A stretch of DNA of 63,720 nucleotides, filler included, from Lenisia limosa (GCA_001655205.1; 14 parts of 14 records of this genome joined end to end with filler, not necessarily neighbours in it), one strand, 5' to 3'. Numbered from the whole stretch's first letter, positions 4,270 to 33,541 are shown. Program-made: numbers and translations. Notes: a model not told the origin generated them from the letters alone.

Positions 4270-7200
4270 CTCTCTCACAATCTATGATTGTATCCAGATG
4301 TGGAGAAATGATTGATAATAATTGTCCGGATCTTTCTTTGACTTCAATATATCCCAAATTCACCAAATTGAGAATAAAAAACAACATAATCATCAACATA
4401 ACATATTTACAATATCTTTTTAGAACACGCTTAGATATTTAGCGAAGGCCATGAGCCGTTATCTTGACATCTTATCGCGTGATCGTTTAGTGTGGAAGGT
4501 CCCATTGTCTTAGCAATTAAGTAAAAATGATTCAAAGAAGGCAGAAAGGCGATTAAGTAAAAGGGAAGCTAATAACACAGTTTAGAACGAGATATATCAG
4601 ACATGTATTATGAATATTATATGTATGCATGTATCGATATGTATGATAGTATATATAGAGAAATGAGAAAACCAAGATTGTATCTGGCCTGTATACCAAA
4701 TACTATTCCTTATTTCATACCTGGATTGTACAAATTGTTTCCAGAGTTGGTGACGCTGAAGGACAGATGATATTGTAAGATTGGTAGTCCGGCAATGGGT
4801 GACAAGGAAGTACTGAATGTTTACAATTGCACTATTGATAATCGTCAACTGTGTAGTTAAATACCCACTTTTTAGGGAGTTTGATGGCAAGATCGAGTAG
4901 CCTTGAACCCACGCGGAACTGGTAGTGTGAAGCATCCGTTTTAGTTTTATTTTACCATTGATATGCAAGTCCTATGAGTAGATTGATGCCCCAATAATCA
5001 CGATTTCAAATATTGACAAAAAAGAAGAAAGAGCTCTCTGAGATTGCCTTACTTTGACGGAGTATAGCTGTCTATCCACTCTGTGTCAACTTTTAACTTT
5101 GGATAAGTTTCCTCTAACCAAGGAAAAACTAAAGATTTTAGGTTCATAAAAATGATAAAACAATTACACTAAATGACAAAGATCTTCTCTTTTACCTAGT
5201 TGAAAGCTGAGCTCCTGAGTCGAACGATCCCACTTGTCCTAATGAGATAAATTGGAAAAACGTCATTTTGTGGCTTATCAAGTGAATTTCAGTTGTAAAT
5301 AAGTTCATATCCATCATTAATAATCTAGTTTGTATTCAAAACAATAAGAGATTCATCAAACCTCTGATATGGGACATCCGATCAAATTGGATTGACATGG
5401 AGTAATGAAAAGGCCAGGAGTTGTACCATGCTGAAAGTAATAAAACGTCAAGTGTTTCATTGACCTTATATTGGTCATTTCATTGTTCTACTCAAAAATG
5501 GAACATATTTTCAGTAATTTATAATCTGGATTTCACGAAAAGTAATTAACATTTCATTTTCAGCTCACAATAAAATCCACTTGGGAATGTGTTTTAGAAT
5601 CAGGAACTGCGAAGTCGGGAGGACTACAGACCCAAAGAGTAGCGTCACCTAGTACACCAATATCAGCACCCGACCTAAATAATTATTTTCTCTTTTTAGT
5701 TTCAATTTCAATTACCAAAAGAATCATAATAGATCATTATATATCCTATAATATGATGTATATTACATGCGTTTTTCTAAATAAACTAGAAAAGATATCA
5801 TATCATATGCGTATATTTTAATATTGTAGTGTTTTCCTATTTTAACTCATCAAGGTTTACATTTAATGGTGAATATTCACAAACATAAGAAGTAATTTCT
5901 GCGGTTTGTCAAAAGCAGCAAAGTCGTTATAAACAAATGTTGCTTGCAGTGTTATGAGTAGAGTACTGTCAAGTGTGTCATCTCTGGATGAGTAAGAAGG
6001 CAATCCTAAAATTCTTATCGTTTACACACCCAATCAGTGGCCAGGTTGGATCTTGGAGTTCGAAGACAGAGTCAATCAGGGTCAATGGGGGCCAATATTT
6101 ACTTATTAGTACGCCAGAACTAGAGTCAGCGCCCTGTCAGGGTTAATTTCAATGTTGAATTCTCATTATTTGTATTGATCCAAATTGAAAACTATGAAAT
6201 TGTAACACTGGAATATGTAATAAAACAGTTTAGCCGAATGTATCAGAGTTACGTTTTGGCGTATATCCTTGCGGTCCTAAATTAGGTCATTAATTGTTAT
6301 TTTGAGTTTTAAAGCCGCAGAAACCAGTTTTCATAACACATCAATTTCTGAGTTGTTTTGGGTTTTTCGGGGTTGTGTTTTTTTCACGAACAGCGTTTTG
6401 GATGAGTTGCGTGCCTTTTTCCGACTAAAAAAGTTAGTGGCCATTATAAACGACTCAAGTAGATTTAGTGGAATCCAAGGCTAAATAAGCAAGTTGAAGA
6501 TAAAAATCAACACTTTTCTGTGAAAATTTCTGTCATTACCGAAAGGACTTGCCTTCTATGGAAAAACAACGGAACATTCCAAAAATCAGTATTTTATTAA
6601 CATCTTTGACAGGTTTCGACTTAAGGGAGTTTACATAGCGGAAACAACTTTCTATAGAAAGTAATTGCTACATTTTGATGATTTTGACAGAAATACAATT
6701 TTTTGGGGTTTTTGGCCAAAAACCACAAATTTGATGACAGCTTATTTCGAGCCTATCTCAAAGATGTTAATAAAATACTGATTTTTGGAATTTTCCGTTG
6801 TTTTTCCATATTAGGCAAGTAAGTCCTTTCGGTAGTGATAGAAAGTTTAACAAGGAATGTTGTTTTTTATCTGCAACTTGCTTATTTAGCCTTGGGTTCC
6901 ACTAAATTTACTTGAGTCATTTATAATGGCAACTAATTTTTTTAGTCGAAAAAGGGCATGTAATTCATCCGAAATATTGTGAGTGAAAAAATTAAATTTG
7001 AAAAACTCAAAATAACCCAGAAATTGAATGTGGTATGAAAACTGGGCTAAAAATGGATTTTTGCGTCTTTAAAACTCAAAATAACAATTAATGACCTAAT
7101 TTAGGACCACGAGCATATGAATATATCACTGCGGCTGAAATGTAGATCGATGAAAACGACCAAAATATGGATAGAGCAACACAAAACATCCAATAGCTAA

Positions 7201-7964: not shown

Positions 7965-8550
7965 TGTCATTTCGGAAGAAAAGTCAATATTCCACATTAT
8001 CTCTTGTTGTCGGAATAATGATCCTCATAACGGCACTTATGAAGTTTGGAGGTGGATATTAAGTGTTGGATAGGCCTCAATTGTCAATTAATGTTTCCAG
8101 CTTTTTCTCAACCCTTGTAATAGAAGACCCCGAGTTTGTTCCATCTTCATTCTTTGCTTCGATTTTTGTATGCAAGGGAATGAGGTCGTTTCTCGCTGAC
8201 TTTTAGATCCTTCAAATTGTGTCCTTTTTCCTTGTACTTCTCGGCTACATTTATGCACATGAGGCCCGCGCCATTACGAGGGAATATGNNNNNNNNNNNN
8301 NNNNNNNNNNNNNNNNNNNNNNNNNNNNNNNNNNNNNNNNNNNNNNNNNNNNNNNNNNNNNNNNNNNNNNNNNNNNNNNNNNNNNNNNNNNNNNNNNNNN
8401 NNNNNNNNNNNTTTAATTTTAAATCTAGGAGTAAATGTTTTGTCGTTAATAGCTCGTGTGGTCTACGTTTTCGTGTACATTGATTATCATCCTTCTGACT
8501 ACTCGTCGTTTTGACTCCGTCTGTGAGCAAGGGTTTGGGGGTTCTATTGT
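7965..8550 (+). CDS. Putative multi-pass membrane protein (partial)
   Basis: Spliced reading RKKSQYSTLSLVVGIMILITALMKFG-EDPEFVPSSFFASIF-ILQIVSFFLVLLGYIYAHEARAITREY with hydrophobic helices. Confidence 0.4.
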
Positions 8551-29280: not shown

Positions 29281-29399
29281 NNNNNNNNNNNNNNNNNNNN
29301 NNNNNNNNNNNNNNNNNNNNNNNNTTAATTAATTAANNNNNNNNNNNNNNNNNNNNNNNNNNNNNNNNNNNNNNNNNNNNGGTCGAAAATTGAGTAAAT

Positions 29400-32300
29400 A
29401 TCATAATGTATATTTGGACGACCGTCATGTGGAGAGTGAATTGAAAAAATTGCTATGTGTCTGGGAGGAAGGTAACTGAAAAACAAACTGCTCTCTTTTT
29501 TTGGACATCAAGGAAGCCCTACTTGTAACCCTTTTATTAGATCTCTGACGAATACGAGGACATTTTGGAGAACCTTAACAAGGCGGATACCAGGCTTGAA
29601 GAAGCCCTCACGTGGGGGGTGTAACCCTAGATATAATATTATTAATTGTTTTAATTTTGTGTAATTTTTAATATTTAAGGTATTTCTTTGCTCTTAAAAA
29701 GGGGCTTTGATTACTCCGTTCATTTTTTATTCCTCACTTCTACAAACATACAGTGACCGGGATAAGTTTTGACTGATTTGCTATGCTGTATGATTTTTCA
29801 AGGAAAATCGGTCAAGGCTTATCCCGGACACTGGGCATATTACATATTATCTCAAGAATCTCTGGAGCAAAGATCGAGTTTTTGAGCCTCACTTTGATCC
29901 ATCCTTTCACAAACGAATCGAACTTGTACATCTTTAATTGTGTTTCATTTCTGCCATATTCACATTTGAAACTTCCTTCTTTTTATTCATTATCCATCTC
30001 TGGAGTGCTCTTTCCTTTCTTAGCTGCCCTTCTTTCTTCTTTTGTTCTTTGACATGTTTCCTTCATTCTAGTCTTCGAAATACAAGTGACATTCGACACA
30101 ATATACCCAATCACATGAATGTCAATAAAAGTGATATAACATATAAATAATATTACCTAGGGAAGAGGCGGCGCTCAGACGGCATATCTCCGACCTCCAG
30201 GAAAAAGAGAACAGAACAAAAGAGGCTGTAGCCGAGGTTGAGGCTCGGATTGCTCTGGCTCGGATAGAGGAGAAAGACGCACGAGACGACTCAGAAATGG
30301 TATTAGGGGGACTGCTTAGCCTAGTCATTGAATCGAAAAAGAATTTTAACGCCGGCGTTAGAATAACGTGAGAAATTGACAGACTGAGGGGATCTATTCA
30401 TATAAGGGGGATCGTGTTTTGCTAACCAAAATTGTTGATTTTGTCATAAATTTTCCACTTTTATCGTGTTTGTTGTTACCTGTTTTTTGTTTGGAGTTTC
30501 AGATTATTCGGTTCGTAATTAGTACCTTTACGGCTAATATTCTTCATCGAAATTTCCTTCGTTTTACACCCCCCCCCCTCAGGTTAACAGGGACCTGAGT
30601 CGACTGAGGGAGTCACGGAAGGACATTGAAGAAGAGTCCCTCGCCCTGGCTGATGTACTTGATAAACTGAAGGTGGGTGGATTGGTATGGAACTCAAATC
30701 CAATATCTCTAAAAAGCGTGCGTGATGGTGTGGGCGGCTTCAGCCAGATACTATAATCCAATATCCCTGATAAGCATGATGGTGTGTAGACCAGATACAA
30801 CCATATTTACTTTACTATTATCTTTATTAACGTGATGAAGGCTTCGACCGGATACAAACTTGTTTAATTTCTCATCCCAGTGGTGATGATTTTAGGAAGG
30901 AATAAAATTCGTCCACTTATCCTAAGTCAATTTGAAACATTATACCAGTCTATGATAAAAACCTTTAATTCCCGCAGAAAATCATCCCAGGAATACAACA
31001 ATATTCCCTAAATACCTGCAGATAATACCAAGAATATAACACTGTTCCTTTTGTAAAAAGAGCACTATTATCCCACCTATCCCACCTCCATGGTTTGTTC
31101 TGCTTCCAAATTCACCACCCCACCACCCCTCATAGAAGGAACACACGACTGTTTTGTCATCTCTTGCTGCGTCTACCAACCATGCTGAAGAGGCCCTACA
31201 AGTGGGGAGGGGGGTACCATTGAAGAGGGCGTACAAGTGGGTAGAGCTTCACTTTCAGTTCCGAAACACCTATAAAATATATCGGGGATTTATCGAGAAT
31301 TCAGTCTTTTTTGGAACCGAAAGTGAAGCTTTACAAGTGGGGAAGGAATCTATTGAATTGTAGTTTGCGGTGTAGGGATGGTGATGGGTAAGACATAAGC
31401 TCTGATATGTATAATATGCAGAAAGCAGTGAAATGGTTTATAATCAGATTTCTGCACCTTCTCCACTTACCATATTAGGAAGTTTCGCACCTTGTCGACA
31501 CCGTCGGAGCAGACGAAACAGCGCTCTTTGCGTCATTGGACGCCACGCGCTCGCTCAGAACGCAAGCTTCTGCACTGCAGGAGGAGGCGGAATCGTGGGG
31601 GAGGGGGATATTCTTTTTTTTTTGGGGGGGGGTTCTCATCTCTTTTTTATGGTCTGTGTATCGGAGTTGGGGTTTTATTGTGGTTGAGGGCTCTCACTTA
31701 ATCTTCACTTCGTTTCNNNNNNNNNNNNNNNNNNNNNNNNNNNNNNNNNNNNNNNNNNNNNNNNNNNNNNNNNNNNNNNNNNNATACCAATATAATATCG
31801 ATACTTTTCGATGATTATTCGAATAATTCAGGTTTTGTTGTTATCAGCCGTCGTGTATTGGCAGCAAACAGAGTTGATTTTGGGCTATATTTTTTTAATC
31901 CCCCTCCAGTGAAATGCAGGAAGCCCGAAATCGACTAGAAGCTGTCATAGCAAAAGCCGAAGACACTGAATTGATCTACCATGTGGGGGGGCCAGGTATA
32001 TTACTTAATGGTTTGCACGCAGAAAGCTGTGTACACAAAGTTGTAAGGCAAATGATTGGGTGAATTAATATAATACTATAATTAATATCGCTTATAAGCG
32101 TGATANNNNNNNNNNNNNNNNNNNNNNNNNNNNNNNNNNNNNNNNNNNNNNNNNNNNNNNNNNNNNNNNNNNNNNNNNNNNNNNNNNNNNNNNNNNNNNN
32201 NNNNNNNNNNNGATCCACAAACTCAGTATATTTTACTCAAAATACTCCAAATTCATCATAAAACTGATCACTCGGTCAAAACTAGGGCTTCACTTACACA

Positions 32301-33541
32301 CCGAAGTGAAGCCCTCGTCATAGCACCATAAATCTATCATAAAACTGATCACTCAGATCACCTCACAAGTCGTTGAAATGGTCAACAATCGAGACCTTGG
32401 CCCGACTGATGACGTCACCGTGCTGGCCGGCCGGACCTACGACCAATTATGCCGCGATGCGGGGTGGGGGGGGGGAGGGGTAACTGGAAACGATATTTTT
32501 ATAATAATTATAAATAACGGACTACGTGCAGTAAATTTTTTGGAGAAATTAATTGACATTGAAATCAAAATGTCTGAAATTGAGTTTACATTGCGTTATG
32601 TCGCACTTCAAATTTTGTAATTATATATAGTATTCTAAATTAATTTCACGGAGCTCAAATAATAACGCCATCATTACGGCTTCACTTTGGTTCGAAAAAC
32701 ACCAGTAAAATATCGATAATTTTCGAAGATTTATCGTGAAATTCAGTCTTTTGCGAAGTGAAGCTCTACTTACCATTATGGAATACTTCCCCCCTCACCC
32801 CTTCAGGCAGGAGCCGGAACATTTGAGCTACGGTCACTCTCAACAAAACTCATCGGTAAGGGGATGACGGGATAAAATGAGCTTTATTGTTCTCTGTTGA
32901 TATTGTTATGTTGATATTTTATTGAAAGAGGGAATACAAATACATAATTGTTTTCTTTTGTTGAGGATGATCATTTACCTTCCAGGCCGACAGAGGCGAC
33001 TATAGAACGCGACTCTCTGAGGAAAACGTGAGTTTGCTTTTGTGCTCTGTTGCTGATGTCAAAAAGCGTTTTCACCTTTCTTTATACATTTTCAGTTTAT
33101 AATAAATACAAAAACAATTACTTCTCATCCCTCCCTCTGTCATTAAGTGTTTGAAAAGTGAACTAATTATAACTATCCTCACTCATCCCCCCAGTCCCCT
33201 CCCGTATTGAATCGGCCGTCTACATTCGACTCAATCGGAGCGGACGTCTCCCATCTTCTTGCAGGTGTGTGTCCTTCACTTCGGTTCAAAAAAAGACTGA
33301 ATTTCTCCAAATATCCTCGAAAATCATCGGTTTTTTATCGGTCTTTTTCAAACCGAAGTGAAGCCCTAATTCTCTCCAATCCTCGGAAGCTCTGACTCGT
33401 ATTCTCACAACCTTATCCAGAATGTAATAGAATATTATACTTATCGAGGATTTATCAAGGATTTATATATTTTCGCCTTTCTATGTACTCTATATTTTTT
33501 CAACATGATATTATTCCTCACCTCTCCCCACAGCATCCGAG
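29400..33541 (+). CDS. Uncharacterised coiled-coil protein (partial, about 10 exons)
   Basis: Phase-consistent exons ISDEYEDILENLNKADTRLEEALT, EEAALRRHISDLQEKENRTKEAVAEVEARIALAR, VNRDLSRLRESRKDIEEESLALADVLDKLK, EMQEARNRLEAVIAKAEDTELIYH. Confidence 0.7.
29751..29832. mobile_element. MITE family C (Tc1/mariner-like, ~75-82 bp)
   Basis: CAGTGACCGGGATAAG...CTTATCCCGGACACTG, preceded by TA. Confidence 0.8.
30481..30582 (+). repeat. Intron 3'-end cassette family D
   Basis: TTTGGAGTTTCAGATTATTCGGTTCGT...CTTCATCGAAATTTCCTTCGTTTTAC-C-tract-CAG; homologous to 58963-59070 (-), shorter matches at 38842-38879 (+) and 62649-62684 (-), each ending at the acceptor AG. Confidence 0.85.
31242..31333. mobile_element. 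MITE family A copy with perfect 8-bp TSD
   Basis: CAAGTGGG at 31234-31241 and 31334-31341 flanking TAGAGCTTCAC...GTGAAGCTTTA. Confidence 0.9.
32283..32316. mobile_element. MITE family A, internally deleted (TIRs only)
   Basis: TAGGGCTTCACTTACACACCGAAGTGAAGCCCTC. Confidence 0.75.
32675..32768. mobile_element. MITE family A copy
   Basis: TACGGCTTCACTTTGGTTCG...GAAGTGAAGCTCTA. Confidence 0.85.
33269..33368. mobile_element. MITE family A copy (left end degraded)
   Basis: CTTCACTTCGGTTC...AACCGAAGTGAAGCCCTA immediately after a splice donor. Confidence 0.8.

Follow-up and report, generated by a model that had tools for sequence, protein, structure and literature searches.

Polarised G and C runs at intron ends of a Lenisia limosa gene, and a C-tailed repeat found at two of them

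Why do introns of a protist gene carry runs of G just inside the 5' splice site and runs of C just before the 3' splice site? The question is raised by a gene on the plus strand (its exons are short and richer in GC, its introns AT-rich) that lies within positions 29381-33541 of a stretch of Lenisia limosa DNA (GCA_001655205.1; 63,720 nucleotides, filler included, consisting of 14 parts joined end to end), called here the window. An earlier reading made from the sequence alone (the sequence-only reading) had described this polarity and offered two explanations: that the two ends pair and loop the intron out, or that the runs are the decayed termini of an intron-generating transposon. At least some of the polarity is, as the sequence reads, the homopolymer tail of an abundant repeat, called here element A, facing the exon.

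The exon model was built by picking GT and AG sites that leave one frame open, and all the junctions of the resulting chain are frame-continuous. Together with L023, a gap-free 8,518-nt contig (NODE_2076) of the ENA assembly ERZ3820729 recovered via the window open reading frame (ORF) 32378-32617, the gene comprises 12 exons and 11 introns, ends with a stop codon, and codes for 378 aa. The identity of L023 to the window is 100% in both outer blocks and 99.7% in the middle block; the contig is a second assembly, not independent data, possibly made from the same reads as the window. Two public sequencing runs were also used, X1 (DNA-like) and X2 (small, poly(A) RNA). The homopolymer runs were reproduced without differences in the Logan contigs of X1 and in the ENA contig, both of which may share source reads with the window.

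All 17 intronic runs of at least four G lie in the 5' half of their own intron, six of them beginning at +3 of the donor GT, and all eight intronic runs of at least four C lie in the last 20 nt before the acceptor AG. The polarity asserted for this gene by the sequence-only reading is far from chance (Mann-Whitney, 2e-6). G runs are likewise enriched early in the introns: 10 of the 17 lie no more than 15 nt from the donor, and the 3' half has none. The piece has nine GTGGG, of which six are predicted donors (Fisher, 3e-7), and acceptors account for six of the 11 AG that have CCCC no more than 16 nt upstream (2e-6). The donors listed earlier as GT plus a G run were read as described, that at 30673 being weaker, and the listed acceptors with a C run before AG (30582, 31909, and about 32807) are all present, the third at 32806.

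The composition of the introns follows the same direction, with G exceeding C over the initial 50 nt in nine of 10 introns and C exceeding G over the final 50 nt in every one of the 10. Sense-strand C runs are absent from the intron interiors, while G runs do occur there (G9 and G17). At donors the runs occupy +3 to +11, and at acceptors they occupy -3 to -20, where the C runs are preceded by a branch-like yTTAC/yTnAy motif and followed by the AG, i.e., in the position of the pyrimidine tract; in introns without a C run the branch-like motif is 5 to 10 nt from the AG. Beyond the window the polarity continues on L023, where intron 11 of this gene opens with GTAT+G13. In a tentative second gene on the same contig (an unverified model) the donors read GTACC+G12, GTAA+G5, and GTATGGAGAA+G7, and the acceptors are preceded by C6TTTC5 and C12T14.

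That the sites in question are real splice sites was borne out by RNA at two of the 10 introns of the window, 29611>30161 (with the GT+G6 donor at 29612) and 33264>33534 (with the C4ACAG acceptor). One X2 poly(A) RNA contig matches exactly 29541-29611, and its last 29 nt were placed at 30161-30189 by bin depth (3.01 x 29/139 = 0.63); a second X2 contig reaches 33264 and then continues with CATCCGAG..., which is 33534-33541. The cleavage site at a run-bearing donor is verified by RNA for 29612 only, and by analogy with it the exact cleavage at 30673, 31202, 31983, and 32464 is presumed.

The repeat that carries the explanation was found at two ends of introns of this one gene. The sequence 30509-30578 at the end of intron 2, which includes a C10 run, is matched at 81% identity, across 70 nt, by the start of intron 11 (L023 4390-4454) read in reverse complement (blastn E 9e-14; nhmmer 2.5e-26 and 9.8e-23); element A may extend upstream to about 30412. 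With a slash marking the exon-intron boundary, the sense copy in intron 2 reads ...AAATTTCCTTCGTTTTACA-C10-TCAG/exon, and the antisense copy in intron 11, read on the sense strand, is exon/GTAT-G13-TAAAGCGAAGGAAATTT.... Two more copies are loose ends of RNA contigs, reading ...TTTTACT-C9-TCACAG and ...Cn-ACCAG, the latter followed by GC-rich sequence. The repeat-to-run junction, TTTAC(A/T)-Cn, is identical in all four copies, so the run is at least partly element A's own tail. This tail faces the exon and lies 2 to 4 nt from the splice dinucleotide in all four copies (three in sense orientation at AG, one at GT, 2 nt away). Since element A stands at both kinds of end, the G run that follows a GT and the C run that precedes an AG can be the same feature in opposite orientations. 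The summed DNA word depth of element A is 99,434, compared with a baseline of 17. Among the four copies the tails measure C10, C13, C9, and Cn, and the copy in intron 11 is shorter than those in intron 2 and in the RNA.

Traces of such a tail were also sought at the other runs. The sequences GGGG-TGTAAC, GGGG-TAAC, and G13-TAAAG are the reverse complements of GTTACA, GTTA, and CTTTA followed by a C run, and the GTA found after several G runs is thus the reverse complement of the motif that precedes a C run. With runs read on the C strand, ..TTAC(A/T) or ..GTA stands directly before eight of 51 runs, versus 5% of controls, and seven of these eight are beside splice sites; this post hoc comparison is a weak hint that the tail origin is wider. 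Other repeats adjoin splice sites too: a copy of family B is truncated exactly at the donor 30673, and a copy of the palindromic family MITE1 (for miniature inverted-repeat transposable element), at 33270-33371, starts 9 nt past the donor 33265. The proposal of decayed transposon termini is directly supported at two ends, where element A closes intron 2 and opens intron 11. As regards an intron-generating unit, no whole-intron element was found and the introns are mosaics of several families.

We regard it as about equally probable to be right or wrong that the polarity as a whole comes from tailed repeats, or from their decayed remains resized by slippage, with the tolerance of splicing acting as a filter. 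The two kinds of run would then be one feature on opposite strands, which faces the exon from a position within the intron 0 to 5 nt away from the splice dinucleotide. A repeat in sense orientation would close an intron (...TTTTACA-Cn-(N2-4)AG/exon), and one in antisense orientation would open it (exon/GTAT-Gn-TAAAG...). The sense C tail with its branch-point-like TTTTAC could serve as a ready branch point and pyrimidine tract, tolerated and probably useful only right before the true AG. Inside an intron such a module would make a cryptic 3' splice site, which we propose as the reason why interior sense C runs are absent and interior G runs are present. The antisense G tail would be harmless in the 5' half of the intron and beside the GT would probably act as a G-run enhancer; that G runs are so strongly in excess between +3 and +11 could reflect either targeted insertion near junctions or the benefit of such an enhancer. 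Beyond the two ends at which element A is seen, we infer the same origin for other runs, a function of the runs in splicing, and a route of the repeat to the splice sites by targeting, intron creation, or selection. As to whether element A generates introns or lands in existing ones, the mosaic make-up of the introns argues against simple one-element introns of the introner type.

Several points weigh against a tail origin. Homology to element A beyond the run itself was detected at only two of about 14 run-bearing splice sites, the others giving nhmmer E values above 1. If the locus is typical, element A, whose word depth is a few thousandfold the baseline, is not abundant enough to account alone for runs at about half of the intron ends. 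Given the mosaic make-up of the introns from several repeat families, preexisting runs may have been where element A landed, the runs then being primary and the repeat secondary. A search for target-site duplications and inverted termini around element A established none. Finally, all of this comes from one 8.5-kb locus, with RNA for two introns and a tentative model of the second gene. A bolder version, in which members of a poly-C-tailed, short retroposon-like family insert at exon-intron junctions throughout the genome or give rise to them, the tail always pointing to the exon, and rewrite intron grammar as a set of mobile splice-signal cassettes (branch point plus C tract at the 3' end, G-run enhancer at the 5' end), seems to us doubtful.

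Of the competing explanations, the one that survives best takes the runs to be lineage-specific splicing signals selected in place, the G run as an enhancer or an extended 5' splice site (perhaps with a changed U1 5' end) and the C run as a C-type tract, with element A homing by annealing of its tail at insertion. The precise placement of the runs at +3 to +11 and -3 to -20, the position of the C runs exactly between the branch-like motif and the AG, and the lack of repeat homology at most runs all speak for it, and vertebrates have established intronic enhancers of both the G-rich and the C-rich kind (PMC2481429). The exon-side donor consensus in this gene is poor (CAC/, AUG/, CAA/, AUC/, and CAU/), which makes help from the intron plausible. 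Such selection is, however, hard to square with a repeat-to-run junction that is precise in all four copies of element A, with run lengths that range from 4 to 17, and with run-less canonical donors that function in the same gene, and we consider it possible but somewhat unlikely.

The runs could also be a neutral by-product, either of slippage that expands short stretches of G or C beside splice sites or of a transcription-linked strand bias. Very variable run lengths, the broad GC-skew gradient, and the mid-intron runs G9 and G17 would fit, but slippage leaves unexplained why six runs start exactly at +3, why sense-strand C runs are missing from intron interiors, and why a 60-nt repeat is joined to the run at two ends; this explanation is quite improbable. 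Telomerase-like A(G)n addition was also weighed as a conceivable source.

A second, more canonical-looking GT(A) lies within 9 to 16 nt after five of the six GT+G-run donors (29621, 30685, 31214, 31996, and 32480), and these may be alternative 5' splice sites or the conserved end of a tailed repeat (G run followed by TGTAA or TAAC). If they were the true donors, the run would be coding (Gly-rich) and some GT+G-run donors would have been mis-called. Use of the second GT keeps the frame at 30673, 31202, 31983, and 32464, two of which need a shifted acceptor (the alternatives at 31996 and 32480). Since the RNA shows use of the first GT at 29612, and the run of intron 11 is continuous with a non-coding repeat, mis-calling is very improbable. 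On L023, two G12 runs stand 89 nt apart (7048-7187), one as ACAG/GTACC+G12 and the other as CAG/GTTCCT+G12 directly after a good acceptor; the second may be a coding Gly run or the marker of a zero-length exon or a nested splice site.

We then determined whether the two ends of an intron belong together, as is required by the first proposal of the sequence-only reading. In the 11 introns of the gene, both runs were present in three, a G run only in five, a C run only in three, and neither in none (odds ratio 0, P = 0.18), so that both occurred in three introns versus 4.4 expected; adding the tentative second gene gave an odds ratio of 0.375 (P = 0.38). With 11 introns this test has little power. 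Predicted duplexes between the first 30 nt and the last 40 nt averaged -14.5 kcal/mol for cognate ends and -16.0 kcal/mol for non-cognate ends (permutation P = 0.85), and the duplex of an intron with itself beat shuffled sequences in one of 10 introns (31595-31909, z = -3.75). That intron has a perfect 10-bp terminal inverted repeat, GGAGGGGGAT near the donor and ATCCCCCTCC at 31898-31907 (z = 4.4). Where both runs exist the predicted duplex is strong (-19 to -29 kcal/mol), and the ends of intron 32464-32806 are paired in the minimum-free-energy fold (z = -2.4), in a predicted stem that would bury the donor at +2 to +9 and the pyrimidine tract. Bridging of the splice sites by the 5' G run and the 3' C run of the same intron, for which (AC)m-(GT)n introns of teleosts and the (GGG)m-(CCC)n arrangement proposed for human introns offer a precedent (PMC4691745), is the weakest of the explanations and hardly credible here, with one kind of run only in eight of 11 introns, cognate ends that pair no better than non-cognate ones, and a stem that would hide the donor and the pyrimidine tract. 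The looping out of introns by terminal G:C pairing thus finds no support in this gene, and the two ends presumably act independently rather than through each other.

The features of the locus are collected in the table below.

Features of the gene, its splice sites, intronic repeats, and assembly gaps (window coordinates unless given for L023; "added" marks acceptors that the sequence-only reading had not listed; a slash marks the limit of a repeat)
Feature	Position	Strand	Remark
Multi-exon gene	29541..33541	+	coiled-coil-like product; continues past the piece to the stop codon on contig L023
Exons	29541-29611, 30161-30299, 30583-30672, 31136-31201, 31479-31594, 31910-31982	+	single open frame
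Exons, continued	32357-32463, 32807-32855, 32986-33027, 33195-33264, 33534-	+	single open frame
Donor GT+G6, then TGTAAC	29612..29619	+	RNA contig ends exactly at 29611
Donor GTATTA+G5 (displaced run)	30300..30310	+	sequence
Donor GTGGGTGG, weaker run; start of family B copy	30673..30790	+	sequence
Donor GT+G4AG6	31202..31214	+	sequence
Donor GT+G5AG5, then T10 and G9 (G9 at +29)	31595..31632	+	sequence
Donor GT+G7	31983..31991	+	sequence
Donor GT+G10AG4, then TAAC	32464..32480	+	sequence
Donor GTAA+G4 (displaced run)	32856..32863	+	sequence
Acceptor C10TCAG	ends 30582	+	end of element A, intron 2
Acceptor C4ACCAC4TCATAG	31118..31135	+	added
Acceptor C5TCCAG, after TTTTTAAT	31900..31909	+	sequence
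Acceptor C6TCAC4TTCAG	32789..32806	+	sequence
Acceptor C6AG	33187..33194	+	added
Acceptor C4ACAG	33526..33533	+	RNA-confirmed; added
Element A	30509..30582	+	core of about 60 nt ending ...CCTTCGTTTTACA, C10 tail, TCAG acceptor of intron 2
MITE1, palindromic, about 95 nt, TA/GGGCTTCACTTCGGTTC...GAACCGAAGTGAAGCCC/TA	31241..31334		summed DNA word depth 2x10^4 to 7x10^4
Further MITE1 copies	32673-32771; 33270-33371; 31700-31840 (across gap 1)		hairpin remnant 32281-32318
Family B	30675-30790; 32016-32105; L023 4500-4585		summed word depth 16,671 vs 17 (30673 copy)
Assembly gap 1	31717..31783		true length 5 nt (AAAAA; L023 2378-2382 and Logan contig), inside MITE1 copy, intron 5
Assembly gap 2	32106..32211		window 32101-32211 is 135 nt on L023: T10, T19, G17, (GT)n; mid intron 6

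About half of the intron sequence has a summed DNA word depth of 10^3 to 10^5, compared with about 17 in the unique parts, and four repeat families were recognised there: MITE1, family B, a palindrome at 29738-29848, and element A. Comparison of the intron termini with each other revealed no similarity beyond these families and no whole-intron similarity. The palindrome is a high-copy repeat, CAGTGACCGGGATAAG...CTTATCCCGGACACTG, that recurs at L023 6810-6900, gives sub-threshold, microRNA-precursor-like Rfam matches, and is probably a MITE hairpin. Both assembly gaps are intronic and leave the frame unaffected. L023 itself begins with G13, and the ERZ3820729 assembly therefore also broke at a run.

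Element A was characterised further. Its predicted fold is not that of a hairpin MITE (z = -0.5), no internal promoter or partner of the long interspersed nuclear element (LINE) type was recognised in the four copies, and Rfam gave no match for it, the only matches being the sub-threshold ones on the palindromic repeat. A metagenome scan with the element A pattern returned 22 chance matches with no extended similarity, and word-index protein searches with the ORFs over element A and over the palindromic repeat returned no matches. The candidate target-site duplications of element A were rejected, as they overlap sequence common to both copies. One comparatively abundant X2 RNA contig of 740 nt (depth 43) starts in another element A copy, which matches 30501-30567, and reads through C9-TCACAG into 640 nt of further sequence; it may represent intron retention, a copy in a 5' untranslated region (UTR), or a transcription start in the repeat.

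Several local duplications were seen near splice sites. The last 21 nt of exon 31136-31201 together with its donor (TGAAGAGGCCCTACAA/GTGGGG; 31186-31209) recur 35 nt downstream (31221-31244), with the G-rich GAGGGGGGTA between the two copies. A third, partial copy follows directly after MITE1 (31321-31344), TACAAGTGGG being present on both sides of that element. Either a long target duplication or the local copying of a splice junction may account for these repeats. A 25-nt direct repeat (92%; 32249-32273 and 32330-32354) brackets the MITE1 hairpin remnant; its second copy bears the acceptor (...CTGATCACTCAG/ATC) and its first reads ...CACTCGG, so the acceptor-proximal sequence is duplicated and the upstream AG is absent. 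On L023, a 27-nt tandem repeat, GTGGTGGAGTAGAAGATGGATAGCTT, lies directly after a GTAAGC donor (5536-5615), and a long (ATT)n microsatellite with interspersed TCATT follows a GTGAGA donor (8255-8518), where the contig ends.

With regard to the gene product, a Pfam search with the exons of this gene and of the tentative second gene on L023 gave no match, and exon 2 used as a query against a library of 1.84 billion proteins gave 0 matches. The region 29381-29540, an open frame ending in GTAACT, was tried as an exon and rejected, since it joins to no exon in frame and is unused by the RNA contig; it is probably intronic. The 3' UTR starts with TAATCT-C5-T-C5 directly after the stop codon (L023 4725-4740) and has a T25 about 130 nt further on (4860-4885). 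Homopolymers are thus not restricted to the introns of this gene.

We rate the pattern as a variation on two things already known, intronic G and C enhancers and transposon-borne splice signals. Should a tail origin hold genome-wide, the tails of transposable elements would supply both 5' and 3' intronic splicing signals depending on their orientation, homopolymer-rich, repeat-built introns would be tied to a concrete mechanism, and complementary intron ends that are otherwise taken as RNA bridging would have a simple, non-adaptive account. It would also account for the assembly breaks inside the introns of this genome. For gene prediction the locus calls for caution, because a donor with a G run after GT can be real despite a canonical-looking GT just downstream, as the RNA at 29612 shows.

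Among the systems with which the locus can be compared, the Physarum polycephalum genome is described as having introns that consist of repeats with splicing signals on either side, and homopolymers at which the assembly breaks (Schaap et al. 2015, PMC4758236). Repeat-built introns and homopolymers were found at this locus as well, whereas a polarity with G 5' and C 3' and a run-tailed repeat at splice sites are not described in that paper. In a literature search of an incomplete library we came across no account of protist introns in which homopolymer runs adjoin the GT and the AG, and none of a run-tailed repeat at splice sites.

Introner elements, i.e., introns generated by transposons, are reportedly the subject of work by Huff et al. 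in 2016 and Gozashti et al. in 2022 on Micromonas, Aureococcus, and others. A transposon model has been proposed for the U12-type introns of Physarum (bioRxiv 10.1101/2020.10.12.336362). As with introners, the terminus of a high-copy repeat here coincides with splice sites (four copies of element A), and inverted orientation gives complementary intron ends. Unlike in introners, what is shared is limited to a tail and some 65 nt of terminal sequence, present at a single end of each intron, without a family of near-identical whole introns; the introns are mosaics, and no convincing target-site duplication and no sign of recent gain were seen at this one locus. Retroposons without long terminal repeats (non-LTR retroposons, such as short interspersed nuclear elements [SINEs] and LINEs) carry a homopolymer 3' tail. 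Judged by only four copies, element A may resemble them in having a constant end with a variable homopolymer (C9 to C13) and a copy, in intron 11, that looks shortened at the other end, but its tail is C, not A, and no target-site duplication, promoter, partner element, or Rfam match was identified for it.

Lin et al. (2016, PMC4691745) demonstrated bridging by (AC)m-(GT)n in fish; they also observed that structured human introns carry G triplets within their initial 40 nt and C triplets within their final 40 nt. The introns studied here share with these the complementary simple sequences at opposite ends, with G 5' and C 3' as in the human case, and differ in that the two runs do not co-occur within introns and overlap the splice signals instead of lying beside them. 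G triplets are said to act as intronic splicing enhancers in vertebrates, a view associated with McCullough and Berget (1997 and 2000). In human introns, G-rich and C-rich intronic enhancers are additive and independent, and Murray et al. (2008, PMC2481429), who weighed pairing between them, saw no need for it. Like these vertebrate enhancers, the sense-strand G runs of the Lenisia gene follow closely on the 5' splice site and the C-rich elements lie near the 3' end of the intron; unlike them, and as known from the sequence, they are long homopolymers (up to G13 to G17 and C10 to C12) that abut GT and AG in the AT-rich introns of a protist, and at least some of them are the tails of an interspersed repeat.

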